A program made the translations under genes and the position numbers. The notes under the pieces were generated by a model. It worked only from the letters and a program-made list of their open reading frames with translations. It was not told the origin of the DNA and ran no database searches. A stretch of 63,833 nucleotides of DNA, filler included, from Hyphochytrium catenoides (Eukaryota > Protista > Hyphochytriomycota), in the NCBI GenBank assembly GCA_900088475.1. It is 15 parts of 15 records of this genome, joined end to end, with 100 filler letters (N's around TTAATTAATTAA, not from the genome) between each part and the next. Parts side by side here need not be neighbours in the genome. Positions count along the whole stretch, not along the records: positions 1 to 17,824 come from FLMG01000370.1; 14 more parts are not named here. One strand, given 5' to 3'. This document shows, one piece after another, positions 1-18,149 of the stretch (positions are counted from its first letter, which is position 1; each line of letters opens with the position of its first letter).

Positions 1-3000
1 TGAGTCAGTGATCTTGACGGTAGAAGGGATGGAGGCGTGAGAGAGCTGAAGAGAGGAAAAAGAGAGTAGTAAAGAAGAGAGAAAGATATGTAAGGTCGTC
101 CTCTTTCTTCCCGGCTCCATAGTATTTGCTACTTTCCTTTCTGCTGATATGAAGGAAAATGGGGCTTGACACGACGAAGAGCACAGGATAGAGAGACCTG
201 CACTTGACAAAGAGAACGTAGAGATGATAGAAGATTGGAGAACAGAGATAAAGACCAGCTAGACGACAGCAGGGAGAGAGAGAGAGAGGTTTAGAGAAAG
301 GAAAGCATCAGCGGGCGCCCTTCGATTTTCTGAGTGGTAGGATTGGGAAAAGAGACCAGCGGAACAGGAAGAGGACGTCGCAAAACACTTCGCAAAGAGA
401 GATTAGCGTGGACAACAAGGTGAGGACAGCGACTCCTGGCGAGAACGGCAAGTGACAGATGACGGGAAGAGTGTAAATGGTAAGCAAAACATGTGATAGG
501 GAGAACACGTAGCGAAGAGGGAGAAGAGGAGTGAGAGAGAATGTGGAGAGAGAAAGTGTGTGTGACAGAGAGAGATAGAGATAGAGAGAGACAGAGAGAG
601 AGAGAGGAGAAGGGACCGAAAAGTGTTCGACAGAGGGAATGCACACTGAAGGTAAGATGCATGGAGGTAGAGCCAGAGCAAGAGTCTGAGTGGGTTCAGT
701 TCGATTATAAATGCTCTTAACGATGGATTAGCAGAACGTTTTCGGCTCAGGGTGGGACACATTCATCCTGTCCATATCGTTGCCTACTTTCCATACGGTG
801 AGGAGCGGCTGGTTAGGTTGGAGAGAGAGACAAAGAAAGAAGAAAGCGAAGAAAATACGGAGCGGTGACATGAGGAGTTCAAGAGGAGAGAGATTCAACG
901 TGCTTCAAGAAAGACTTTCTTCAGTGTTATTATCAGAAGAGCAGAGCAACTGTTGGGAAGAAAGAGACGTTTTCTCACATCTCCCTCCCACTCATCACCA
1001 ATGCGTCTAAGCAATATACAGCTTTCTCTCCTGTCAACCTTCTGTTCTCGACTTCCCAGACGTCTGTCCGATTCAACCATGCGTCTTGTTTGGACCGAAT
1101 CTCTTTCAATGGAAGCAGTAGCAGTGTCATGCTTCTTTCTTAGCAATCAGTTCTGACTCTCTTTTTATTGTGTGAGCTGGAAAGGATCATGCAGAGAGGA
1201 AGAGGGAGAGAAACTGCGAAAAAAGGAAGAGGAAAGCAGAGCCGGACTGAGAACAATGGCGAGACAGAGGATAAGGGAGAGAACGAGAGAGAGGGAGGGC
1301 GAGAGAGAGAGAGAGAGAGAGAGGCGGAAGGCAGCGAGACATTGAGAGGCACAAAAAGGTCAGAGAAAGGAGAGAGAAAAAGCACATAAAAAAAGGGCGG
1401 TAAAAGAGAGGAAGATAGTTCTAGTTCAATCGTAAACACTCGAGGGGAGAACATGGGAGAGCAGAAACAGAGAGAAGTAAGATAGTGCTCTTTTATAAAA
1501 AAGAGAGGAGAGAGACAGAGAGAGAGGGAGACATATAAAATATAAAGCCAGTGCAAGCCCAGAGTTTACACCTACGAGACTCTAGCGCCACTACTACAAC
1601 TATAACGGTAGTACTCTACTGTAAAACGGTAGAAGCCTCTTTTGCCTATAGAACTACGCTTTGTCGACATCCTCCTAGCCTATCCTGTATCCTGTACGGA
1701 CTGACTAGCCAACTCCTTTTAGCATAGCAGAGTCATGAAGTACCTCGACACAGGTTTGGGTCAGCCTGAGCTTGCTATCGGCCACCGAACTGCCAGAAAG
1801 GAATATGTGTGGGAGCCCTGAGCCCATCTTCAGACTTTAGCTCCGACTCGTTGTGCCTCCTTTTGTCTGAATAGAATGGGGTCGTTCCGCGCTTTTACCC
1901 GTGTTATTGTTCTCTCTCTCTCTCTCTCTTCTCTCCTGTCCTTGAATCCTTCCCTGACTCTGTCTCTTTACCTTCTTCCCTCTCTCCTCTCCTTCTGTCT
2001 CTCAATTGATTTTGTTCTATTATTTATAATAGCTCTACTATAGAACTACTCTTTTAGCCTCTTTCAGCGCTCACCTCGGTTCCTTCTCCGTTTCTTTCTG
2101 GCCCTGTTTTGGGTTCCAGTTCAACCTAGAGGAGGAGTTCTCAGCGTGATGATGATGTCTTGGCACTGTCTTGGCGCTGCGCCATCTTCTTCTCCTCCTC
2201 CGTCTCCTCCTGGCGCTATTGCCGAGGAGTTCAACGACGATTCATGTTCCCCTTTCCGATAAGGATGGTGGAGGAAGAGAGCGTGATAGAGCATCTTTAT
2301 AAAAGAGTCTCCCTAGGACTTTGTAAGCTACTTTGTAGCTCTTGTCTCTTTTCGTCTTCTTCTTCCTGGTGGGACACTGACTAGTGCTAAGTCACTGGAG
2401 AGCGTTAACCCTAAGAGAATATACGTCCGACACGTAGTACGTACTATATCTACCCAAAACATCTTCTTCTTCTTTCTCCCCTTCTTCTTCTTCTTTTGCG
2501 TTTTCTTTCTCTTCGTAGCACTATCCTATAATAAAAAGTCATAAGGTAGATGTTAACAAATAAAGACAACTGGGACGGCGATGGAGAAACACCGCGGCAC
2601 AGTCTCTGGCAAGGACAGTGAGAGGAACAGGAGGAAACAGTTCTAAAGTACTCCGTAGTAGAATAGGAAAACAAGAAGCAGTGATGATTCTAGAGGGCAA
2701 GCAAGACACAACTGCACGCAGAAAAGCACGAGAATGAGGGGTCGCTTCTTCAGCACAGCAAGGACAACACACATCAGCTTGGAGAAGAAAGTGGGAGGAG
2801 GTAACAGATAGGCAGATAGACGTCGTAACGTCGTACGGTCCAGGGCAAAGACGATATGACTGCTGTTCTTGCTGGTCGTGGAGCAGGGCAACAACCCAGG
2901 AAGTAAGGGCCCCATGGTAGATGTTCCACTAGTTAGCTTCTCTAGTTATATAATGTTGCTGCTCTGATTGAGATGTTCCCGATGTTCCGGTTCTTCCTTC

Positions 3001-3939
3001 TTCGTCCTCACCTAAGTGTCGTCGGTCATACACCTGTGGCAGCCTGTCTGAGATGACCTCTCCTCGTATCTATCTGCTACGATATGACACTCTCCTGACC
3101 CCTCTCCTCATTCCACCGTGGAAAGCTTGACCTAGGATTTGTTAATGAGAGAATCTAAGTGGAAAGTTTCTTTCATCCATAATAGGTGCTGTCGAGCTAC
3201 CCTACCTGAGCGCCAGGCAGCAGGGAAGTCATCAAGCCAATGTCTCTTCAAAAGCACCTGATCAGAATAGTGGTGCATCATTTTGCATAGTATGTATGGG
3301 CTGAGTGCCATAATACCAAATGCTTCCTTTATTAAAAATGAATTAGCCCTTGGCCCTTTATTCTCCGCTTCTGCTTCCTCTTATTTTTTCTTCTTCTCCT
3401 CTTTCTCCTCAAGTTCCGGCCGTCTCTGCCTCTTTCGTTTGTCCTGTTGCGGTTCGAGAGGAGGATCAAGACTTCTTCCTATCACGCGTTAGTGGTGAGG
3501 AAGGTGAATAACGCCTTCCTTCTTCAGTGGGCTCCCGCAGCACCCGCGTCCTGTCAATCCTCCCGGACCGCCACTTATTATGGTGGCCGGGTGAGCTCCC
3601 TCATCATGCTTCTTTGCTCTCTTTCTCATTCTCTTTATTTCAGGACTACTAGTTCCTTTCTCTTGTTCCTCTTCTTTTTCGTAGTACGCATTTTTCACAT
3701 TTCTTCTTCTCTTTATAGTATACAAAAACAGTAGTAGACACAGCCTACAACCTCACTCTTCTTGTTATCAACAAGCAGGGCAGCTGTTACAGCCTAGTCA
3801 CTGCTGGATTTTTGCTCGTTTACATAAAGCCGAAGAGTTCAACTATGATTCTTCTTCCTTTTCCGACAATGATTGTGGAGGAGGAGAGTGTGCTAAAGAA
3901 GAGTCCAGGACTTTTGTGGCTATCGTCTCATCTTCAATC

Positions 3940-4088
3940 TCTTCCTTCTTCTCCTCCTCCTCCTCCTTCTTCTGCTTCTTCTTCTTCTTTCTCCTTCTCC
4001 TTCTACTTCTTCTTCTTCTCCTCCTTCTTCTTCTCCTTCTTCTCCTCCTCCTCCTTCCCCCCTCCTCCTCCTTCTTCTTCTTCTTCTT
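3940..4088. repeat. (CTT/CCT)n trinucleotide microsatellite
   Basis: Directly visible; it produces the poly-S/F, poly-L and poly-R/K/E spurious ORFs. Confidence 0.95.
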
Positions 4089-4331
4089 TAACTTCTTCAT
4101 AGAAGTTATCTTTAGAAGTATTACTCAAGAATTATTTGTACATCTAGTCTATCCTTTACCATACAGTACCATACTGTAATAAGGCCTTGGGTGTAATGTA
4201 GCACTAATCTTCCTTGTCCGGTGCAGGACAGAACAGTAGTAGAACTAGGATGAGAGCGAACTAAAGGTGGACGGGCTATTTTAGCCCAGCCGGTTTGGGT
4301 ACTTTGGGGTAGAATAGTTATTTTGGGAAGA

Positions 4332-4462
4332 GTGATGTAATGAGCCTTTCCTCAATTAGCATGAACTGCCGGACATTCTAGTCTCCGCTAATTTCGTGAT
4401 GTAATGAGCCTTTCCTCAATTAGCATGAACTGCCGGACATTCTAGTCTCCGCTAATTTCGTG
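4332..4462. repeat. Perfect 64-bp tandem duplication
   Basis: GTGATGTAATGAGCCTTTCCTCAATTAGCATGAACTGCCGGACATTCTAGTCTCCGCTAATTTC occurs at 4332-4395 and 4396-4459, followed by GTG. Confidence 0.95.
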
Positions 4463-4864
4463 CCGATTGGGGAGGTTGTACTACCGTTTTACCAAGTGCA
4501 CAAGTACAAGTACCTGTATTACTACTACTTAGGGAGCAGTTCGTACTTGCCATCTCGTCTTCGGCTGTCCCCTCCCAGCACTATCTTAGGCGGTTCTCTA
4601 GGTATCTTAGGGAAGACTACACAGCGCACTGATCAGCAGGTAGAACCCCAACCTCGGCGATGTGCGGACTTTACGTTTTAACCCTTCTTTCTCTCTCTCT
4701 CTCTCTCTCTGACGTTCACTTTCCCTCCTTCTCTTCCCTCTCCCTAGCTTTCTGCTTGTTTTTCTCTCTCTCTTCTGCATGCGATGCTACCTTCTTTACT
4801 GTACATGTATTCTAAAGCCCCTAGTCCGAATCTTTTGTTCGGCTGGGAAGACAGCAGATCTTAG

Positions 4865-4921
<57 letters not shown>

Positions 4922-5510
4922 TCACACAAACATTCTTCCACTCAAAACCATGTATTTACTTTCACTGTTAGAACTATTGTCTATTACTGATCACAGAAAG
5001 TAGGGAACAGATCAGTGCTCGCGTTCTCCTTCTTTCATCCTTCTAACGCTTAACCCTCGCTGATGAAGGTCTCTCTCTCTGTTTCCCTCTCTCTTTTCCA
5101 AGCTCCTCTCTCTTCTCTACCAGCCATACAAGATCAGAATGTCGATCAGAACAGCTAAGAATCCGGCAAAATATGCTTCCTTAGGTTCAACTGTTATTTA
5201 CCTTCGAGTGCTTCTCTTGCAGACCACCAGAATCGGAGCTTCGGTCCCTAACGCACCCAGGCTTCGCTCCCTATGCACTCTTACTCTCTCTCGCGTCCCA
5301 AACCTATTCCTCTTCATTATCCTAACCCTGATAATGGCTCTTCATACGATCTAGAGAAGAGCCAAGCGCCGCTCCGGTCCCACGATGTGAATGTCTAGAG
5401 AAGCTCAGCTCCCAGCTTCCTATTCTACCCATCTCAAGATAGAATTAGCTCTCTCTGTCTCTCTCTCTCTCCTCCTCTCTCTCTCGCTTCTCTCTCTCTC
5501 TCTCCTCATC

Positions 5511-5541
<31 letters not shown>

Positions 5542-6532
5542 CTCTTTCTCTCTCTCCCCACATTCCCCTTGGCCTCTCCTAAACTCCCCAGGCCTGCTCC
5601 TCTGTTCCTCTGATGTCGTCCTCATCTCTCTATCTCTTTCCCCTGCTTGGTTTGAAGTTCTTGTTCTCTCGCCCTTTACTTCTTCTGAAATGTTCTTCTC
5701 CTCCTTCTGCCAATCACATGGGCTTCTCATTCCTACTCTTGCCCGTCTGTCTCTTTCTATCCTCCTCTTCGGATCGCCTCTCTTTCTACCTGGTCATCTT
5801 TCATTTCTTTCCTTTCCCTATCCATCGTTCTTTCGTTTCTTCTCTCTCTTGCGGTTCTTCTCAATGTTCTTCTTTTCCCTGTTTCTCTCTTTTCTCATTG
5901 TAGTCGAAAGTCAGCAGTACTGCCAACCCTGTAACTCCCTCTGCGAGAGACCAACGACTTCTCTTTCTCACTTTCTTTCACGTTCTTGAGTTGTCGTCTT
6001 GCCTCAATGTCCCTCATTCTTGCGCTCTCTCTCTCTATGACGGACACATCCCGCAAGCCATTGTGCCGTCGCGCAGTCTGAAGCCTCCGATCCGTGATCT
6101 CGCTGCAAAGATAACGTGACAACGGAAGGGAGAGAGAAGACTCATCACTGTTGGTCTTCCGTACTCTTTAACCTTGCCCACTTCATTCATCAAAGCTCAT
6201 CTGGTTCTTCTCTTCTCTCTCCCATTTTTCTCTATCTCTCTGGCGGCATTGACCGTTCTCGAAAGCTGTGAAGGAGAGCAGGAGCCTCTCATTATCCTCT
6301 TTCTCAAACCTCCTACTTGTGGCTGCTTTCCTAACTAGAGCTCGTGGACCAGACAGGGAGAGCAAGTTACAGCGTCCGTTCCTCTTCCTGGCTGGTCTTT
6401 CCCTTCTCTTCTTTTGAAAGTAAAGCTTCTTGGAAAGACCCGGCCGCAGCCTCTCGTCTCCCTGCGTACAGGGCTGGGAAAGTAGCCTCAGAGGCTAACA
6501 CTGAGCCCAACCTTAATTCTCTCCCTCTCTCT

Positions 6533-6586
6533 CTCTCTTGTCTTCTCTTGTCTTCTCTTGTCTTCTCTTGTCTTCTCTTGTCTTCC
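6533..6586. repeat. 10-bp tandem repeat (TCTTCTCTTG)n just upstream of the ankyrin gene
   Basis: Four exact units plus partial flanking units, directly visible. Confidence 0.9.
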
Positions 6587-6616
6587 TGTTAATTTCCTTT
6601 CTCTTATCTACAAGCT

Positions 6617-8239
6617 ATGAGGAGAGTCACGGGAAAGGGAAAGCAGAAGGCTGCCAAAGGGCCTCTTCTCCCTTCCTCTCTCTGCTCAGCCCCTGCGCCA
6701 CTGGAGGGTAAGGCGGGAGGAAAGAGAAAGCGCAGCGATATATCAAAGAAAGATCAAACAGAGGAAAATGGGAAAAGAGAAAAAGAGTTCAAGGCTTGCT
6801 CTCTCTCTTCGATAAAGGAGGAAGAGAAGAAGAAAGGAGGCAACGATGGAGTTAGCAGCAAGCTTCTCCTGTCTTCAGTGTTAGGAGAGAAGACTAGTGA
6901 TAAGACAGAGGCCTCACACCCTTCTTCTCTTGCTTCTGCTAGCACAGTGCTGAAGGAAAAGAGAGAGAGAACGACTCTCTCTTCTTCATCTTCTTCTTCT
7001 CTCTCTCTCCGACTCCACCCTTTCTCCTCCTCTTTCTCTTCCTCCAACTCTCTTTCTCTCCCATCCAAGGCAACCCTTCCTAAAGCCCTTTTTGATCGTG
7101 TGGGGCAGCTTACCGGCCGCACCTCCACACTTTTTGAATATCTTCAAAGCTTTCAGGAAGGGCAGACGTTCGGAGATTGGCGAAATGGCGATTATGCAGC
7201 CAGACAAGGGCATCTCTCTCTCATGAAGCTTCATCCGAAACTAGAGTACTCGCCCATGGCCATGGACTATGCGGCACAAAGCGGACGCCTCGATGTGGTT
7301 CAATGGCTGCACGAAAATAGATCAGAAGGCTGCACGCCTTACGCTATGGACGCCGCGGCCGCGCAGGCTCATCTTCCCGTCTTAGAGTACTTGCACAGCA
7401 TCGGGAAGCGCTGCACAGTTGCCGCTATGGATATTGCTGCTCAACGAGGACATATGGAGATTCTCCGCTGGTTGCACCAGCATCGGACAGAAGGATGCAG
7501 TCATATTGCCATGGATTACGCGGCCCAGATGGGACACTTGGACATCGTGAAGTGGCTCCATGAGCTAGGGAAGCCTTGTACAACCTGGGCCTTTGACGCT
7601 CCTGCAGGCAGCGGACATCTCCGTGTGATCCAATGGCTCGCCGCTAACCGAACCGAGGGCTTTACTCATTGGGCGGTAGACGAGGCAGCCAAGAACGGGC
7701 ATCTCCATGTCATAGAGTGGCTGCATGAGAAGGGCGTACGAGGCACCTCCGAGGCCGTGGACTGGGCGGCAGGAAGCGGACGATTGGAGGTGCTTCAATG
7801 GCTAGACGAGAACGGTTATGACGAGTGCTCGACAGAGGCCATGGACAGAGCGGCGGAGAACGGGCATCTGGATGTCGTGGTGTGGCTACATCTAAGGAAG
7901 AGAGCAAAGTGCACAGTGACTGCAATGAATATGGCAGCTGCCAATGGCCATCTGGATGTTGTCCAATGGCTTCACGCCAATCGGAGAGAGGGCTGTACCT
8001 TCTTAGCTATGGACATGGCAGCTGCCAATGGCTATCTAGAAGTCTGTCAGTGGCTGCATGAGCATCGGACAGAAGGATGCACAGAACACGCCTTAATGTT
8101 TGCTATGGAGTACGGCCACACAGCCATTGCCGAGTGGCTCATAACGAACCGTCCAGAAGTAATGTTGGCAGCGCAAGGCGCAGGCCGAGGAGAAGAAGAA
8201 GGAGAGGCAGCAGGAGGCAATCCTAACAGTATCTTCTAA
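6617..8239 (+). CDS. Ankyrin-repeat protein (oomycete/chytrid-type short repeats), 540 aa, low-complexity N-terminus
   Basis: Single ORF with about 13 repeats of the form AMDxAAxxGHLxVVxWLHxxRxEGCT. Confidence 0.92.
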   Translation: MRRVTGKGKQKAAKGPLLPSSLCSAPAPLEGKAGGKRKRSDISKKDQTEENGKREKEFKACSLSSIKEEEKKKGGNDGVSSKLLLSSVLGEKTSDKTEASHPSSLASASTVLKEKRERTTLSSSSSSSLSLRLHPFSSSFSSSNSLSLPSKATLPKALFDRVGQLTGRTSTLFEYLQSFQEGQTFGDWRNGDYAARQGHLSLMKLHPKLEYSPMAMDYAAQSGRLDVVQWLHENRSEGCTPYAMDAAAAQAHLPVLEYLHSIGKRCTVAAMDIAAQRGHMEILRWLHQHRTEGCSHIAMDYAAQMGHLDIVKWLHELGKPCTTWAFDAPAGSGHLRVIQWLAANRTEGFTHWAVDEAAKNGHLHVIEWLHEKGVRGTSEAVDWAAGSGRLEVLQWLDENGYDECSTEAMDRAAENGHLDVVVWLHLRKRAKCTVTAMNMAAANGHLDVVQWLHANRREGCTFLAMDMAAANGYLEVCQWLHEHRTEGCTEHALMFAMEYGHTAIAEWLITNRPEVMLAAQGAGRGEEEGEAAGGNPNSIF

Positions 8240-8554
8240 TCGTCAAATGCTGGGCGGGAAGCAGGTGGAAGAAGCGGTTCAACAGGCAAAGAGAAGAAAG
8301 ACAAAAACAGAAAGCGACAGAGGGAGGTCGAGGCCAGTCCTTTCTGCTCGCCGCTGAGCTTTGCTGCCCTCAGCCTCTGTACAGAGAAAGGAGTCGCGCA
8401 AGTCCGCTTCCCTCTCTTGCACTACCTCTAACTACCGCCTCGCGTGCGCCATCTATAAACTATCTCTCTCACTTTCTAACTGTTCAACTCAGTCTTCTCC
8501 CTCGCTTTTTTCTTTCTTCTCCTCTCATTCCACATTGCGTTGCAATGTCTAAGA

Positions 8555-8610
<56 letters not shown>

Positions 8611-9384
8611 ACCAGCTCATACCATACCTTTTCCTCTATCCTATTTTGCCTTCACTATTTATAGAAACATCCCGCTCCAAGCAAGGAGCGACGTAGCGCC
8701 TCATTATTTTATAAAATGCAACCCATAAATATTAAAGAAGTTAACACTCTGCAGAGTGAAGATGTGGATCTTTCTTCACCTTCTCCGGCTGATGTGAGCT
8801 CGGCTCCGATTAATTCCCTTGCGTCTGAGGCGATCATTCTCTGGAGTGAGAGGACTCATGGCCTTGTCATCTTTCTCTCTCTCTTCCTTTCTCTCTCTCT
8901 CTCTCTCTCCCCCTCTCTTCTTTCTTCCCCTATTATTGAAAGTTGTCTGTCTCTGGGCCTTCTTTGTTGTCGCCATATGAACAAACATGTCTTCTGAAGC
9001 GAGAGAGAAAGAGAGAACCTGAAGGTGGTGAAACAGTAAGGAAAGACCGACACGGAAGAGAAGAGCGAAACAACAGGAGGAAATGAGAGAGACCGCCCGC
9101 GAGAGAGAGACACACAAGAGACAGACGAGAGATTACTAGGACCAAGCGTAATCATATGATTAGAGCAAAGAAGTCTCTATTTTTATCTTTCATAAGAAAA
9201 GAAATGCAGGCTGCTAACTAACATCAGTTTACCTAGCAGCTATTGGGTTTTCCACCTTACAGCGTGTCTCTTCTCTTATTACTCTCTTTTCGTCTCTCTC
9301 CTGCTTTCAATAAGCTCACAGTCTCCTCGCAAGTTCTGGGTTGAAAAGCATGAAAAGACATCCATGTCACCGGCAGCCGCTCAG

Positions 9385-12300
9385 TTAATGAAAGCATGTC
9401 TTCTTGAAGTATCCCCTTGCCAGCAGCCAGCACCCCGGTACAGTTGCCCACCACCAGGCACCAAAGAGAACGGAGAGAACCGTCCAAAGCATCTCAAATG
9501 CTGGAACGACGAGGTGTTCCGAAACACTTGCCGAGAACTGGGACAGTAACTCACGCTGAGAGGAAGAGAGAAAAAAAGAGAAGAAGAGAAACCGATGCCA
9601 GGCATAATACACATAGGGAATGGAGTCCGCCAAGAGAAGACCGCCTAATGTGGGGTACAGGGCAGCGAAATTGGAGCAGACTACGCCATTTACGATCTGC
9701 AAATAAGACGCAAGGGTGAATGCGTGGGTTAGGTGCCTCCCATCATGGCAATGCGGAGAAACGAAGACAGAGGAAGGGCAACAACACGCACCACCGAGAG
9801 AGAGAAGAAAGCCACGATAAGCTTGCCCACCAATACGGAAAAGTAAATCGAGCGATAAGTAAGAAAACAGACGCGGAAGGAGACAAACAAGGGGAACACG
9901 CTGACTGAGAGCAAGAAGGGCCACAGCTGCAGCAGAAAGAACGGAATGAAAAAACAAAACCAGAGAAAAGGGAAATACTAACGGCCTCCTTACCAGATTA
10001 CCGTCCATGGTGTAGAGGTTTACAAGCGACACCTTCTCTTTTTCCTCCGATACCCGGCGCACCACTGCCCGAAGGGTAATCTGATGCTGATATGGGATGA
10101 GGAGCACGGGTTAATACTGCTTGAAGAAGATTTGGGCCTTTGTTTTGTTAGGCAGCCGGGATCTGTCCGCAGACACATTTCCTCTGTCTTCGTTGAGCAT
10201 TGTTCATCTCTTTTCTCTCTGGCTCTCTTCCTTGTACCAGCCTCTGTTCCCTGCCTCGCTCGTCTGTCCAGCTCTACATTTGTGTCCATGTCCAAACTGC
10301 AAAAGTAATAACCTAAATATTCGCCAAAAAGCTTCTTTAAACTAACGCTGGCCCCAGTTCCCGCTTACCATGGAAGAATAGTACAGGACTTCGTCTCCTG
10401 ATGTGAGAGAACTTGCCGGTACAGCTACTGCATCTTCCTTCCCTCGCCAAGGATGCGGTGCCGAATTGCCAACGGCTTGATAGAGAAGATGCTCAGGTGT
10501 CAACCGCAGGGTGATAATTTCTACGCAAGAGCCGTCTTGACCCTCAGATCCCGGACAAGCATCAACAACCTGCAGCTCAACGCTGAAAGTGTGCCAAAAA
10601 AATGGGAGCATCGTTAAAATCCAACAGTGGGGGCTCTCGCTCCCTGGTGCCGTATGCTGATACAACTTCATGACAAGCCGACAGGCTTGGTATAGCGAGA
10701 AGACAATTGCCAAACTCACTCTGGTGACCAAGCAGGAGATCAAAGGCTTGTTTGATGTGAAAGACGACGCTAAGTCAGAGAAGAAACTGCAGCACTTGAG
10801 ACGAAGAGCACTCCAAAGTTGAAGGAACTGGTCAAGGGCGTACCTTAGCAGAGTATTAATTGACCCGCTATCGCCATTATGAACCTGCTTGTGATAGACC
10901 TGGGTCCAGCCCAACACTCCTGACCGACGAGAAGTTAATAGGAAAGTAGGAGCAGAAGCCATTAAAACAGTTGAAAAGTGGATGGATCGACAGGAAGGAA
11001 AGAAGAAGCTTAACGGTAGTAAAAGGATTACTACAAGAAGCACTCAAAGAAAAGTGGTCCCCAGCATCATTAGCGTATGTCATCCTCCAAGCCTCGAGCA
11101 AGACACCACCCTCTCAGGGAACACATAAACAGATAAGGAGACACAGCTATAAAATTCTTGCAACCGAGAAGACTCTCTTAGCAAGAAGAGGGCAGGATAT
11201 TGGCCAGCACTGTGCCCATCACAATGTCAAACATACAAAAGAACAGATAAAAAATGAGTGGGGGATGAGGGTTAGCGGAGAGGGTAAGCGACCAGCGCGC
11301 ACCTGAAGCCGAGGAAGACAGCACATAGTCACCAAGAGAGACGTCGACAATCTTCTTTCTTTCGCCTCCAAGCAAAATCACCCGAGAATCCTCCGCGAAA
11401 CACCTAGCTGGGAAAGCACCATGGTAAGCATAATAGGGACCACTGTTCAATCGAGACACAAAGTGCAGGCCAAACAGAGAGAAAAATGCAAGATCAGATC
11501 CTGAGCGCTCCAGCAGATATCGAAACAGACAAATTATAAATGATGTTCTCGCTTGTATCTTCCCATTCCCTGAACTGCCCTCTCTTTCTCCCGGTGGAAA
11601 CCCCCTGCATCAGCCCTCGTATCCCGCTTCTGTTCAACAATCTCTCGCCTACTGAGCACGTCGAAAATGTACCAGTCCTAAATCACAAAGGCCCAGAACG
11701 TGGCACGTAGAGAAAGAATTCGGCATAAACGCGATTCAGGTTCGCAACATACGAGGGGGAGGAGGATCCGTGGGCTGTGGCCGTGGTCCATCATAAGTTA
11801 GATTCGCTTGTCCGTCATATATACCACCATGATACCCACAGTACCAAGGTTTGTCTTCTCCGCAGTAGCCCCACTTTGAGCAACAAAACGTGGCCTTACA
11901 TGCGCGCCACTCATAATGCGACCCACATCTGTCATTCGTGGTAAAACGATATCCAGCCCAGTTCACAGGTTCACGGGGCGGTGATCCATTGTATTTGCTA
12001 TATGGATCCTTGCTACATCCTTCAGGCGGTGCGGGCTCACAAGCATCATTATAACTACTGCAGCAATGGTTCATGGGATCGCATTTGTCGACGGAGTTAG
12101 CATTATCCAAGGTTGATGAAAGCATGCAGTACTCCTTGTCTGCTGAAGAAGGGCCGCCGAAGAGATTTCCAACGCCATATTGACGATAAGCCACACCAGA
12201 AGACAACTGAGTAAAGTATAGAAGGCAGTCTTCGAACAGAAAGTTTCTGTAGCTCTCTAAGGCGTGATATTCAGTTTTCCGAGTATTCGACAGCTTGGTC

Positions 12301-13681
12301 CGTATATCCATCCCAGAAAATTGGTCGTTGCGACCCAATAACCAAAGAACCCTGTTATTCAGCGGGCAAGGCGGTGTTGAACAGGAAGAACTGTGAAGGA
12401 TGATAGGAGTTCCCCAATGATATCGTGGCCCTGCCGCCGGAACTATGTCATTCTCATGCATAATGCGGTATTTCACATACTTGCCATCCAACAAGTACGG
12501 AGATGCAGAGACCGCAGAGGGAGGCTCTCCAAAGGTGATGATGTGAATTTTTTGCAACCCATCGTTCTCCGAGTACGCAAACCCCTTTCTCTTAGCGTAA
12601 TCCATAATATCAACACCAGCAATTGACGCCAACGCTCCGCCGCGAGAATGACCGACCACGAGTACTTTGGTTGATGATCCCTGAGCGTACAAGATTCCAA
12701 AGCTTTCATCACTTCTTCCCTCATAAACTCTTTGTAATAGTGAAGGAATCCGTTACTTCCTTCGTAGATAACGTCGGTCGTCGGACTAACCCAGGAACTC
12801 ATTGTGCCACCCATACAGTTCGTATTGCGTAACCAGGTCCTTGAAGGACCTGAAGTAGATATAGAGCCCACTGTGCCGCGGAACGCGAAGACACACATTC
12901 CACGGTCTGGAACCCGTGCGTAGAAGCCGTAGTCTCCCTGCGACTCCACATCAGTAAAGTCATAGTCATAGCTCTCAAAATCACCCTGATGAGGAAGGCG
13001 TTTAACCCCAAAGAACTCTTGCGCTATTCCGTGTTCTCCCATCAACTGCTGGTAATATTCCTGGGGCACGTTCTGGGGGCGATGGCCAAGCTCGTAAGCT
13101 AGAGTTGAGTAGAGAAGGGCAATGGCAACACGGACTTTGTGCTTGAAGAACCAGACCTTACCAGCTCCTGTAGCATTTGGTGTTTCGACTTCAATATTGC
13201 GTAATGTTTTCAGAGTAGCTTCGATGGTGTCGGCCATTGTATAGCCATAGTTTATCGGGTCGAGAGTATAGCCATATAACTGGGAAGAGTTGGCGGGAAT
13301 CGTCGGCCCGAAAGAGGTTTGAGCCATGGAAATGGAGGGTGAGATGGGCGAGCTGTCGTTTGCGGATGCTGCATGATTGTCACCTTCTTGAGGAGGTCCA
13401 GAAGAAAGAAGAAAAGCAGCCAGACCAGCACCTACAAGTCCCACACTCAGCGAGACAATCATGGCAAACCTTTTTCGAGGACGCTGCGACTCCCAGGTCT
13501 TAGCGGTGGAGCTGTCAGACTCGGCAGGATAACCTCGTTCCTCACTGTGGAAAAGAGGTATCGTGGCAGAGGTTCTGGAGCTTGGAAGAGCAATGGCAAA
13601 CCTCTGGCTCCCCTCAACATTCTCGATAGCGCCCCGCTGGTCGGAAGCCGGCGTTGGTGGGATCTGCTGGTAGAAATCCAT
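9385..13681 (-). CDS. Signal-anchored class 3 lipase + hevein/CBM18 + Pro linker + Hint (Hog-like) autoprocessing domain + hydrophobic tail; 6 exons, one frameshift near 12690
   Basis: Exons: 13681-11753 (frameshift near 12690), 11407-11303, 10919-10844, 10582-10369, 10086 (or 10080)-9994 and 9696-9385. All introns are GT-AG with matching phase. Motifs: TM segment FAMIVSLSVGLVGAGLAAFLL; lipase FAFRGT, GHSRGG, TFGEP, HENDIVP, EYHALESY; hevein CGSHYEWRACKATFCCSKWGYCGEDKPWYC; Hint CFAEDSRV..KKIVDVSLGDYVLS, LRLTPEHLLY, VPASSLTSGDEVL, NLYTMDGNLIVNGVVCSN. Confidence 0.8.
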
Positions 13682-13949
13682 TGTTGTCGCTCTCTGTCAT
13701 ACGAAATGAATCGGAGAGCGTTAAAGGTCTGCGGTCAGGATTTGCTCTGTGGTCGCGGATGGTCACCCTTAGAGGACGACCGCGCTGTCCGGGGCTGTAG
13801 CCTTAACACTGAGTGAGGAGAATGGTCGAATGAGGGAATCCGAGGAGGAGGGGAAAAAAGCAGTAGTCACCGGTTGTTCGTGGAGGGGATGGAGTGGCCA
13901 TTGCCTTCAGGGCTTTTCTTGGGGCGATGGGCTCCAGTTGGTCGGCTTG

Positions 13950-16290
13950 TATCGGGGTCTCTTTTCAAGAAGTACAATAATTTTAAGACTGGTTTTGGAG
14001 GGAGCACATAATGAGCCAATGAGTGAAGAGGGCCTCCTAAGATGTTTGGAGGGCAGAAGGAATCTTTCTGGGATCTATTCCAAGTTCTACTGTTATTTAT
14101 TAACTATGCTCGTTTTGTGGAACAGGGAAAGAAGAAGAAGACGGAGCCCGAAAAGCAAGTACTGTAAAGGCTTTCTCACGTCGTCTTTCGGGAGCGCCTC
14201 TCTCTCTTTAATTCGCTCCACCATCTCTTCTCTTCTCCCCTACCGCCAACAGCTCCGTCAACGCATCTTTTTGCAGGCTATGTCAAAACGTTTACAGGGA
14301 GGTGGTGGCAGTCAGTATAAGATAAGGACTACCAGGGCTAGCACTTTACTAATTCTCGAGGGCCATGGTAGAAACCACCACAGGAACGACGACTACTACG
14401 ATCACAACCGATGAGTTTGCGTGAAGTATTTTCCGTTCTCCGTTTTTGGAAGAAAGGAGAACCGAGGAGGAGATCAGTCTTTATATTTTATATTGGGCGG
14501 AGCTAAAACACGGAGATCAGTCATAATATTATTATATAATCGTAGGCAGAGAACGGAGATTACTTCCCGCATACAACTGATGACTGACGTCCAGAGTAGT
14601 GTTACATTTTGACGTCTAGTAATAGTGTTTGTTCCAACCTTTTACTTTTTCCCTGTGTAGAACTACTAGGAGGTAGTAGAATGGCACATCAGCTCCTATG
14701 CTTCCGTTATGTTCTACTATTAACTGGTAACTACCCGACAATGTCTTCCCATGCACACGTCAATAGTGACGAAGTCCATGCACCGTAAACCTTGAACCAC
14801 CTGAGCAGCACGGTAAAGGACACAACGCTCTGGGTTCTTATTCTCAGACCGAGCACTGGACCTGATCTTGCTTAGGCGCGTCTGGACCTGGATGCGCCTG
14901 GTATCCGTTCTACAGAGAAAAAGTTGAGAGCCTCTTTCTTCTTTTCTCTTCTCTGGGGTCTATTCCACGTGGCAATACGGAGCCTATAACCCAGCCTATT
15001 AATAGTTATTGTTGTCGTCGATGGCGCCCCTACCACCAGTAGTCCGTTATTAACAAAATTTCTGTAAAGGAAGAGCTCTCCATGTGGACTCCACGGCCTG
15101 CCCTCGCAACTTTCCATGAATTCATGACAGCTGTGAAGAATATTTCAATAGCTAGTTAGAATGTTGTTACTTTCCTGTAGTTCTATGCATTAACCCGGGT
15201 GGTGATACTTCTTACGACCGAGCTTAGTTCAACTTTGTCCAGTAGTATTCTATAGGTAAACGTATTAGCGGTTGGATTACCTTCGCTCGTTGGATGGGGA
15301 GAGAAACTCTCCGAATGTCGACTGGTCTGTTGGGATTCCACCCGTAGCTCTTCCGCTCAACAACAACGTGAACGGAATGATGAGGCAGAACAGTCGACAT
15401 TCGGAGAGTTTCGCGTTGTTGAGAGTTTATACGTTGTCGGAAGAAACAGATAAAGGAATGATGAGGCAGCAAGCGATCTTCCGCTCAACAACGCGAACGG
15501 AAAGCAAAAGAAACAGGAGGAGCGCCCAGCTGAATAAGATGTTCATCACTTTCAGCGTCAGCAGTATACCAGGGGGCCGGCGGCGCCGAGCTTGTATCAG
15601 CAGCAGTCGTCGTTCTAATAATGCATGGGAGGCAGAGCCTTCTTCTTATAAACTTTCTACTACACTACCGTCTCCCTTTTCGCGGCCGCACAATTGTCAG
15701 CATACTTCGAAGCGTAGGAGTGCTCCTCCTCCAACTATACCATAGCCTTTCGACGAACTGCATAGAGTTCTGTGTCCCAGGTCTATTCTTTCAGCAGTCA
15801 CCTCATCGATAGTTAGCTAGTGATCCTCTTCTCCGTTATCATCGATGGGATTTTTTTATAAAAAAACTACTCCGTATAACAAAGGCCAACCACCAACTAA
15901 CCTTTATTCCTCTCCAGGGTTTCGATCTTGCATGCAGATAAAATAATAAAGGCCTTTCTCGCCCGAGGTTGTTGCAATCTTGCATGAGATAACGTGCCGC
16001 CTTACAAGAGTTAATGGCAAAAATGATCATCGACGCTAGCATCCTTGTCACCCTTCCTGGAGGTTGGTCATCGTTAAGCTGCTGGCCTTCCTTCTTGTGT
16101 TGATCGGCGCTTTGCTGAGAGCTTCCGCGGCCGGCAGCAGTAGGAATAAGTCGTCACAACTCTCGAGTAGTCTTAGGATGAACCCAGTCTGTGCCACGGA
16201 TTGAATCTGCAGACTGACTTCTGAAGCCACAATAATCTCCAGATAGGGGCTGTAGATACTGAAAACGAATCTGCTGCGTCAATTCTAAAT
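13950..16290. other. Complex intergenic tract, probably a decayed repeat/TE relic
   Basis: Microsatellite-poor and TA-enriched, with no recognisable ORF. Short internal direct repeats: TGACGTC(C/T)AG near 14585/14610, and TCTTCCGCTCAACAAC and GGAATGATGAGGCAG each twice within 15348-15500. Confidence 0.35.
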
Positions 16291-16778
16291 CTTAGCTGCT
16301 TGGGTTCAGATGTCCTGTCACAACCCTGGCTTTCCTGCTTGCAGTGGGGCGGCTCTGCTTCTCGTCTCTCAACTTTTCTGGCTTTTTTCTTCCGTTCTTC
16401 TCTCTCTTTTTTAACTCTCTCCTCCTCAATTGTGTTCTTCTTCTCTCTCTCTCCTGCCTTCTTCTTGGCTGTCCTTCACTGCTCAGTTTTGTTTCTCAGT
16501 GGTAAGGCTCTCCCTCCTTCGGCGCTTTGTTACCTCCTCTTCTTCTCTCCCTTGTATTGCATCTCTCCTCTTTCTCTATCGCTTTTCGATATCGGAAAAG
16601 CTCCTCGTTCAATCTCAGCTGCGTCCTACGGACATACGTTTCTTGTGCATGTTGCCGAGAATGGCTACTTCTTTCTCACTTTTGGGCCTGGGTGAAGCTC
16701 GTCAAGCGTCCGTGTCTGTGCTGCTTCTTGTTGGGTGTGTACGTCTTCTCCCCTCTTCTCCCTCTCCTCTTCCCTCCT

Positions 16779-16815
<37 letters not shown>

Positions 16816-16990
16816 AACAATTCCTCTCTTCTTCTTATCTCTTTTCCTCTCTCTCTCTCTTCTCTTGTTGGACGTACTACTCTTCTCCCTCTGTCTTGCT
16901 GCGGTCTCTCTTACTCATCCCTAAAAATCTCAAGCTCAGCGCCTTGCTGATACGACGGTTAAAATATATTTAGTCTTTTGGACGAGGAGG

Positions 16991-18149
16991 TCAGAGACCT
17001 GGGATTGTGAACTTTCCTTTGCTCGTCCACACGGCCCCGACCTCCGTCAGGTCCTTGTACGCTTCGGCGTAGGACTGCAGCCAATCTGTGTTGCTCACGG
17101 TATATTCCAGGATCTCCTGAGCCCACTCCCGGACATCTTCAGACAGTTTCTCTTGATTCATGAGCTTCCCGTTAGAGAACGGACAGAGATTGATGGGAGA
17201 GTTCATTGCGTCTGAGACGGTGTACTGCCAGTTGGCATCTCCTGTCCAATGGACCTCCTTCGCCTTCGTATACTTGTTCGTGGAGACCGTCAGATTGCCG
17301 GCCCACTGGTCCGTGTACCATTTGTTAGTCCATTTGAACTGCTGCGCGCCATCGGCTCTGCCTTTCCCGTCTTCCATAATAGCGTGGGCGCCCAGGAGGG
17401 CGGCGCCTCTGCTCACGTCCAAACCAATGCTCTTCCAATAGGCCGCCATATCTACGGATGATGATTAGAAAATGGGAAGAGGGAACGAGAAAGAAATGAG
17501 AGAAAGAAAGAAAGAGAGAGAGAGGGAAAGAGAGAACGAGGAGAAGGAAGAGAGAGAGAGAGAGAGAACAATGAAGAGGAATGAACTTATAACCTGACAG
17601 GAAGAAACATAAGGAAGAAGTGCAGGAAGAACTTGGAAGTAAGATTTGAAAGGGAGAGAGCGAATGCAAGATGAAAGAGAATGATCTTTTAGGACACGAA
17701 GCAAGAAGAAGAAAGATAAGTGGCGAAGGAAGAAAGAAGCCAGATGTCAACTGGAAACGGTAGTATCGGTAGAACAAGGAACAAAGCAAGCGAGAGCTAG
17801 AAAGAGAGAGAGAGAGAGAGAGAGNNNNNNNNNNNNNNNNNNNNNNNNNNNNNNNNNNNNNNNNNNNNTTAATTAATTAANNNNNNNNNNNNNNNNNNNN
17901 NNNNNNNNNNNNNNNNNNNNNNNNATCAGAGTCGATGAATAACCTGATGGCCAGAGTCCTGCACCAGTCGTAGGTGGGGCCAGCCCCAGCGACCTCTAGG
18001 AACGGCTTGATCTCCTCAACTGAATGGAACTCGTAGCCAGTCAAGGCCATCTGCGAAGATGGAGAATGATAAGACACAAGGACCACTGAGAGAGAAAGAC
18101 AAAGAGAGAGAAAGCAAAAGAGAGAGAAAGAAGAAGTAACAGAATGCGC

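Follow-up and report, generated by a model that had tools for sequence, protein, structure and literature searches.

What would a Hedgehog-type autoprocessing domain do behind a lipase in the protist Hyphochytrium catenoides? The window that we analysed, a stretch of 63,833 nucleotides (nt), filler included, joined from 15 parts of the GenBank assembly GCA_900088475.1, carries on its minus strand a locus at 13681-9385, within the part that comes from FLMG01000370.1 (positions 1 to 17,824). An open reading frame (ORF) listing and the raw sequence show five open stretches there. The best explanation of the locus as a whole, and one in which we place moderate confidence, is a single spliced gene for a secretory precursor of about 909 residues, in which a lipase, a hevein-like module, and a linker are followed by an active Hog domain, the autoprocessing module of the Hedgehog family. 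Hog proteins are known in protists, algae, moss, and fungi, and their cargoes have no recognisable domains except for a GTPase in Glomus GIN1 (Burglin 2008, PMC2362128). The locus probably encodes a genuine precursor of the Hog family, one whose enzyme cargo is new.

How do the open stretches combine into one product? Boundaries found by exact string search and joined by script give six exons and five GT-AG introns over 13681-9385, and a stop-free product of 909 residues. Exon 1 (13681-11753) starts with the ATG at 13681 and ends in phase 1 at a C/GTATGT donor whose last exon base is 11753. Its first part (13681-12695; residues 1-329) runs from the N-terminal region through a hydrophobic segment into the first half of the lipase, and its second part (12692-11753; residues 331-644 and one base) covers the C-terminal half of the lipase, a Cys-rich region, and a Pro-rich linker. 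Intron 1 (11752-11408; 345 nt, GTATGT...CCCAG, phase 1) links this linker to Arg-Cys-Phe; its acceptor reads ...TTTCCCAG/CT AGG TGT, and the first base of exon 2 is 11407. The Hint domain starts in exon 2 (11407-11303), with Cys646 at 11402-11400. Beyond intron 2 (11302-10920; 383 nt, GTGCGC...GTCAG, phase 1) lies exon 3 (10919-10844), only 76 nt long, which carries Asp695 (10872-10870) and is required for the phases to be reconciled (1 in, 2 out). Intron 3 (10843-10583; 261 nt, GTACGC...TTCAG, phase 2) leads to exon 4 (10582-10369), which holds Hint block B, with Thr732 and His735 (TPEH at 10500-10489), and ASSLTSGD. Intron 4 (10368-10087; 282 or 288 nt, GTAAGC...ATCAG, phase 0) precedes exon 5 (10086-9994), which ends ...NLYTMDGNL. 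Intron 5 (9993-9697; 297 nt, GTAAGG...TGCAG, phase 0; 69% pyrimidine on the sense strand) precedes exon 6 (9696-9385), which completes the Hint core (IVNGVVCSNFA, to about 9670) and then encodes a tail of about 90 residues, up to the stop codon at 9387-9385.

This exon structure is self-consistent. The original prediction had drawn an intron from 11752 to 11408 and placed the first Cys of the Hint domain at 11402-11400, and string search found all three exactly there; the four further in-phase GT-AG introns that it had proposed were borne out at the positions given above by the stop-free joined product, which contains the Hint motifs it had named (CF, TPEH, ASSLTSGD, and NLYTMDGNL/IVNGVVCSN). 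A codon-usage score, trained on the other exons and the neighbouring ankyrin gene, is best in the proposed frame for each exon, the tail of exon 6 excepted, reaches its highest exon value in exon 3, and is negative in each of the five introns and in the flanks on either side. Introns 3 and 5 are stop-free multiples of three and keep the frame; we take them as introns by homology, by their GT-AG ends, and by coding score, not by necessity. The sense strand of three of the gene's five introns is 59-69% pyrimidine. A tandem acceptor (CAG CAT CAG) occupies 10080-10086 before exon 5, where an equally possible alternative site 6 nt on would yield two in-frame products differing by His-Gln.

Is the downstream half a Hint domain? 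A Pfam scan covering 24,736 families matched three separate pieces of it to Hint (PF01079): exon 2 alone at profile positions 13-45 (7.6e-4, 19.6 bits), exon 4 at positions 77-116 (11.5 bits), and the peptide across the junction of exons 5 and 6 at positions 128-163 (11.5 bits), the match ending at 163 of 213. Each piece lies under the Pfam cut-off of 29.7; the rough sum of the separately scored pieces, 42.6, exceeds it. That three pieces should match one family of 24,736 in colinear order cannot reasonably be put down to chance, as judged from these profile matches. In the PDB, exon 2 finds its best match in residues 1-32 of the autoprocessing domain of Drosophila Hedgehog (1AT0), to whose residue 1 Cys646 aligns; an intein Hint model is also matched, weakly. 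Exon 3 alone matched no profile, and the ORFs that read through introns 3 and 5 matched no Pfam family. The Hint domain of the original prediction is well supported by these three pieces and by the best solved match.

The residues expected of a processing Hint domain can be placed on the product. Cys646-Phe (11402-11397) comes directly after the cargo, and LTPEH lies at 10503-10489. The active-site set of human SHH includes a nucleophile-activating Asp, D243 (PMC7906309); Asp695 lies 49 residues past Cys1, as against 45 in Drosophila by manual alignment, and this spacing and alignment make it the putative counterpart of the Hedgehog general-base Asp. Asn815 of the CSN motif is followed by Phe and not by Cys, Ser, or Thr, with no extein and about 90 non-conserved residues after it. 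A Phe after this Asn and the lack of an extein fit Hog-type N-terminal cleavage rather than protein splicing. An intein was considered for the same module and ruled out, Asn815 having no following nucleophile and the product no C-extein. The tail encoded by exon 6 has two hydrophobic stretches (residues 868-887, 9513-9454). Here the original prediction had seen a DSIPYVYYAWHR segment like the sterol-recognition region and a C-terminal hydrophobic helix; both are within the ORF, but they match no profile and show no codon-usage signal, the last 73 codons (9606-9388) scoring -0.15 in all frames. This sterol-recognition-like tail is the weakest part of the model.

What does the Hog domain carry? 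Near the N-terminus, residues 71-95 (13471-13397) form a hydrophobic segment with a Kyte-Doolittle 19-residue mean of 2.28, which would be a signal anchor if translation starts at 13681 and the core of a cleavable signal peptide if it starts at Met74 (13462). The precursor had been described as membrane-anchored; the hydrophobic stretch is there, but whether it is an anchor or a cleavable signal hinges on the start codon. The downstream frame of exon 1 matches Lipase_3 (PF01764) at 3e-12 and 47.1 bits against a cut-off of 22, so the lipase call holds. In phmmer alignments with solved structures, GHSRGG (the G-x-S-x-G elbow) and the Asp of DIVP align to Rhizopus, Thermomyces, and Rhizomucor lipases. 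The putative catalytic residues are Ser346 (12647-12645) and Asp412 (12449-12447), placed by alignment, and His473 (12266-12264; EYHALESY), a candidate assigned from the motif alone. Motif reading of the upstream frame finds FRGT (12889-12878) and GF spaced as in solved lipases; for this half of the domain the Atlas offered a weak Lipase_3 lead, and searches of Pfam and the PDB returned no match.

Between the lipase and the linker lies a hevein-like (CBM18-type) module with six cysteines (11963-11811; residues 574-624), which reads NWAGY ... CCSKWGYCG ... WYC ... GIYDG. Its match to Chitin_bind_1 (PF00187; 5.9e-4, 20.5 bits) is below the cut-off of 27.8. An exhaustive HMMER search of 1.84 billion representative proteins with the lipase-hevein ORF returned 23 matches, 21 of them on this module and two on short lipase fragments. 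Chitin_bind_1 was found in all 18 module relatives scanned (once weakly), in most of them above the cut-off and in some below, and the best library match, P0001, carries no Pfam family. When it is aligned with ten related modules, eight columns (C, G, C, CCS, C, C) are invariant, and the NWAGY and GIYDG flanks are shared. The AlphaFold (AF2) model built from that alignment has a predicted local distance difference test (pLDDT) score of 79.8, and its first 26 fold matches in the PDB are all hevein, wheat germ agglutinin, Urtica agglutinin, hevein-type antimicrobial peptides, or CBM18, with E-values that are weak, as is to be expected of a 30-residue knot. By alignment and model the module is of the six-cysteine hevein type, with the Ser and aromatics that contact N-acetylglucosamine (GlcNAc) in hevein, and is predicted to bind chitin. 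The chitin-binding hevein domain proposed earlier thus falls short of the Pfam cut-off, but its relatives and its fold matches speak for it.

Two further observations concern this region. A Cys-rich unit upstream of the module (12083-11990; C-x5-CC-S-x5-C-x7-C, read from the translation) matches no Pfam family and is possibly a degenerate second hevein-like unit. Elsewhere, the NWAGY/GIYDG sub-type (P0001-P0004, P0008) occurs as tandem modules in short, membrane-anchored, Pro/Ser/Thr-rich proteins of metagenomic contigs, and it may be an undescribed CBM18 sub-family. No Hint or lipase was found in the module relatives scanned with Pfam.

Why does the lipase lie in two frames? The ATG-13681 frame is open from 13696 to 12476, and the one that encodes the lipase serine is open from 12752. 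By the frame map and the translations, ...FMREEVMKALE and LYAQGSSTKVLVVGHSRGG... lie in different frames, with the switch between ...KALE and LYAQG... at about 12690-12697; at the fourth residue of the downstream frame the Lipase_3 match sets in, with profile position 59. Of the claim that five ORF entries form one gene, the joining of the exons in phase stands, but the first two entries (13681-12473 and 12692-11736) overlap in different frames, and uniting them takes a one-base frame change inside the lipase domain. An X is kept at this point throughout the translations. An intron was also considered as the cause of the break and was ruled out: the frames overlap by 277 nt, and within this overlap conserved lipase motifs flank a single point. 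The break is either a base-count error in the draft assembly or a real inactivating (strain-specific) lesion; we read it provisionally as an assembly error or a strain-specific lesion. Small DNA runs dated 2011-2017 contain the locus, and soil and wastewater metagenomes contain part of it; among the latter is a soil run, X7, which looks unspliced and hence DNA-like and whose reads do not reach the break.

Could the gene be dead? If the architecture is as proposed and the frame break is real, translation would end at 12475-12473, and neither lipase nor Hog would be made. Such a pseudogene would account for a break within a conserved lipase domain. It is also in keeping with the exonic differences between X7 and the window, both of which (2 of 2) are non-synonymous and so give no sign of constraint, with the lack of orthologues to show constraint, and with expression not being seen in the runs searched. 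Yet the break would be the sole lesion in about 2.7 kilobases of exons in which splice sites, catalytic residues, and cysteines are all intact, and the codon-usage signal is kept on either side of it. The source runs, moreover, are small and old, which would fit a draft assembly with base-count errors. On this balance we regard a pseudogene as fairly unlikely.

Are the lipase and the Hint domain parts of one gene or of two? The donor of intron 1 lies 14 nt before the stop of the lipase ORF (11738-11736) and is the only strong donor in the right phase; read-through runs into a stop 5 codons on. No ATG occurs in the frame of exon 2 from its upstream stop (above 11609) to Cys1, so an upstream exon is needed. 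The 345-nt gap is similar in size to the other four introns, and the convergent ankyrin gene bounds the locus downstream. A Hog domain needs a cargo at its N-terminus and a way into the secretory pathway (Burglin 2008, PMC2362128), and the upstream ORF supplies a hydrophobic segment and a disulfide-rich module suited to that pathway. Because the Hint exon has no ATG, an in-phase donor lies near the stop, the introns are similar in size, and the downstream gene is convergent, a single gene is the most economical reading, and the splice from exon 1 to exon 2 is, on these features of the sequence, probable.

The alternative is that the lipase-hevein gene ends at 11738-11736 and that the first exon of a separate Hog gene lies in the 345-nt gap or elsewhere, reached by trans-splicing or left unassembled. 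The ORF does stop 14 nt past the proposed donor, and mini-exons with an ATG are formally possible in the gap. However, these would encode peptides of 3-26 residues with no clear signal sequence, they have weak donors, and they would require introns far shorter than the other four. The gap itself, which matches the other introns, is too short for a terminator and a promoter, and the need of a Hog domain for a cargo and secretory entry (PMC2362128) also speaks against a separate gene.

The soil relatives bear on the same question. Contigs of X7 (depths 15, 8, and 4) match 9200-11722 at about 99.5% identity and 11786-12078 at 100%, with the lipase part absent; above 11722 one of them continues for 290 nt that differ from the window, and above 12078 another does so for 418 nt. 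X7 thus differs 5' of 11722 while the Hint half is nearly identical, which favours two genes in that the halves are separable in relatives. Against this, by our own comparison the 30 loose letters of X7 past 11722 look like intron 1 of the window in diverged form and not like unrelated sequence. X7 seems to contain several variants (strains, alleles, or paralogues) with a common Hint half and different upstream sequence, the contig depths pointing to two or more. It neither confirms nor refutes the lipase-Hint splice, and it hints that the Hog half can be combined with different 5' parts; the pattern may reflect a small Hog gene family with exchangeable cargo, or structural variation. Taken together, the evidence makes two separate genes improbable.

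Several results, the X7 contigs without the lipase part and with different upstream sequence among them, weigh against the single precursor. A search of sequencing runs found no RNA run that contains the locus, and three metatranscriptomes of the one study with related DNA showed no RNA coverage and no splice joints there. Neither an orthologue nor a like architecture was found among the 1.84 billion representatives (searched with the lipase-hevein ORF) or in a word-indexed library (searched with the N-terminal ORF), and scans of Joint Genome Institute (JGI) metagenomes with the lipase ORF and Hint exon 4 gave no match. Since no orthologue was found, conservation cannot be used as support. The window contains no paralogue of the gene and no Rfam match.

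How would the single-gene precursor work? We infer its catalytic competence, nucleophile, topology, and biological target from the Hedgehog mechanism. The precursor would enter the endoplasmic reticulum, where the lumenal lipase and lectin modules would fold. The Hint domain would then turn the Arg645-Cys646 bond into a thioester by an N-to-S acyl shift involving Cys646, Thr732, and His735, and a nucleophile would resolve the thioester, freeing a lipase-lectin fragment of about 645 residues from the Hog fragment. A sterol or other lipid nucleophile, placed by the hydrophobic tail and activated by Asp695, would leave the fragment with a C-terminal lipid anchor; water as the nucleophile would give plain release. 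With the upstream ATG the fragment would keep its N-terminal membrane segment, whereas with a start at Met74 that segment would be a cleavable signal. The hevein module would steer the lipase to chitin or GlcNAc-rich surfaces. Double anchoring of the precursor and an attack on chitin-walled cells, both part of the original prediction, are possibilities of the same kind.

Arg instead of Gly before Cys1, a SCYA motif that reads CSNFA with its Cys displaced, and a tail with no coding signal are reasons for caution about this mechanism. That the gene is single and its Hint domain does not process, being an inactive structural relic or having its fold broken by retained introns 3 and 5, could appeal to Arg at -1, the altered SCYA motif, pieces that each fall below the cut-off, and the stop-free, multiple-of-three length of those introns, but it is very improbable in view of Cys1, the putative general-base Asp, and Thr-x-x-His all at the expected spacing and of the canonical ends and negative coding scores of both introns. 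The most specific form of the proposal is that a non-animal Hog domain puts a sterol or lipid ester on the C-terminus of an enzyme, which would yield a lipid-anchored, chitin-targeted lipase on the protist cell surface or on vesicles. By analogy with Hedgehog this is conceivable, and we offer it as a tentative idea that is rather unlikely to prove right in full.

The convergent neighbour of the Hog gene is a single-exon gene on the plus strand (6617-8239) for an ankyrin-repeat protein of 540 residues (Ank_4, 3e-43). Its best relatives, in oomycetes, chytrids, dictyostelids, and metagenomic contigs, share 31-49% identity with it, and none is near-identical; the organism's proteome therefore seems absent from the libraries. 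On the other side, a minus-strand ORF of 152 residues (16991-17449) has an Atlas feature score of 0.95 to PF00141 clusters and no Pfam or library match. It resembles the C-terminal half of a plant-type haem peroxidase, whose exons further upstream are probably located nearer the end of the piece. Many (GA)n/(CT)n microsatellites and a 64-nt tandem duplication are scattered over the region (4332-4462, 4867-4907, 5448-5558, 8551-8609, 8870-8919, and 16779-16865), and purine/pyrimidine strand skew is strong over kilobases, for example at 3000-6000.

What would such a protein mean? Of the many N-terminal cargoes to which Hog domains are fused in protists and nematodes, almost none has a recognisable activity, and the role of the ancestral Hog domain is still open (PMC2362128). 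The words lipase and chitin do not occur in the text of that Hog survey, and in a full-text literature search, which did not extend to domain-architecture databases, no lipase or chitin-binding cargo turned up on any Hint or Hog protein; the suggestion that this combination is not among described proteins agrees with both. A Hog protein with an assayable enzyme and a lectin would offer a direct experimental handle on cleavage by a non-animal Hog domain, on the nucleophile, and on the effect of lipidation on where an enzyme acts. If the proposal is true, Hog autoprocessing would be a general device for anchoring enzymes, beyond the making of signalling ligands, and the lipase would have an unusual route of delivery to chitin-bearing surfaces. 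For now the value of the locus is limited by the frame break in the lipase and by a splice that is predicted from sequence logic.

How does the precursor compare with known systems? With hevein, wheat germ agglutinin, and Ac-AMP2-type peptides the lectin module has in common the CCS-x-aromatic-G-aromatic-CG core, Ser, Trp, Tyr, and Tyr at the sugar-contact positions, and a predicted fold that is alike. It differs from hevein and CBM18 in having six rather than eight cysteines, in scoring below the Pfam cut-off, and in representing a separate sub-type, flanked by NWAGY and GIYDG, that is known mostly from metagenomic proteins. The lipase shares with the fungal class-3 lipases of Thermomyces lanuginosus (1TIB/1DT3), Rhizopus (6A0W/1LGY), and Rhizomucor (3TGL) the nucleophile Ser of GHSxGG and the Asp of DIVP over about 80 aligned residues. 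The identity, however, is only about 30%, with GHSRGG in place of GHSLGG, and the domain here is frame-interrupted, preceded by a long N-terminal extension with a membrane segment, and fused to a lectin and a Hog module.

The closest parallel to the whole is the Hog of the Hedgehog family, found in animal Hedgehog, nematode warthog, groundhog, and quahog, choanoflagellate Hoglet, and protist and red-algal proteins. All have a secreted or membrane-inserted cargo followed by a Cys-Phe Hint domain, Thr-Pro-x-His, no C-extein, and a hydrophobic tail past the Hint core, and the Hyphochytrium protein has a candidate for the general-base Asp as well. What sets the Hyphochytrium protein apart is that its cargo is an enzyme with a lectin module, that Arg stands before Cys where the family has Gly, and that CSNFA replaces SCYA; adduct-recognition motifs are not recognisable in it, and the coding status of its tail is doubtful. 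Inteins and the HINT domains of bacterial polymorphic toxins resemble it in the Hint fold and in how the reaction would begin, by an acyl shift at the N-terminal Cys. Unlike inteins, it lacks both a C-extein and a nucleophile behind the terminal Asn, and splicing is not expected. Toxin HINTs release a C-terminal toxin (PMC3417536), whereas the part released here would be N-terminal.

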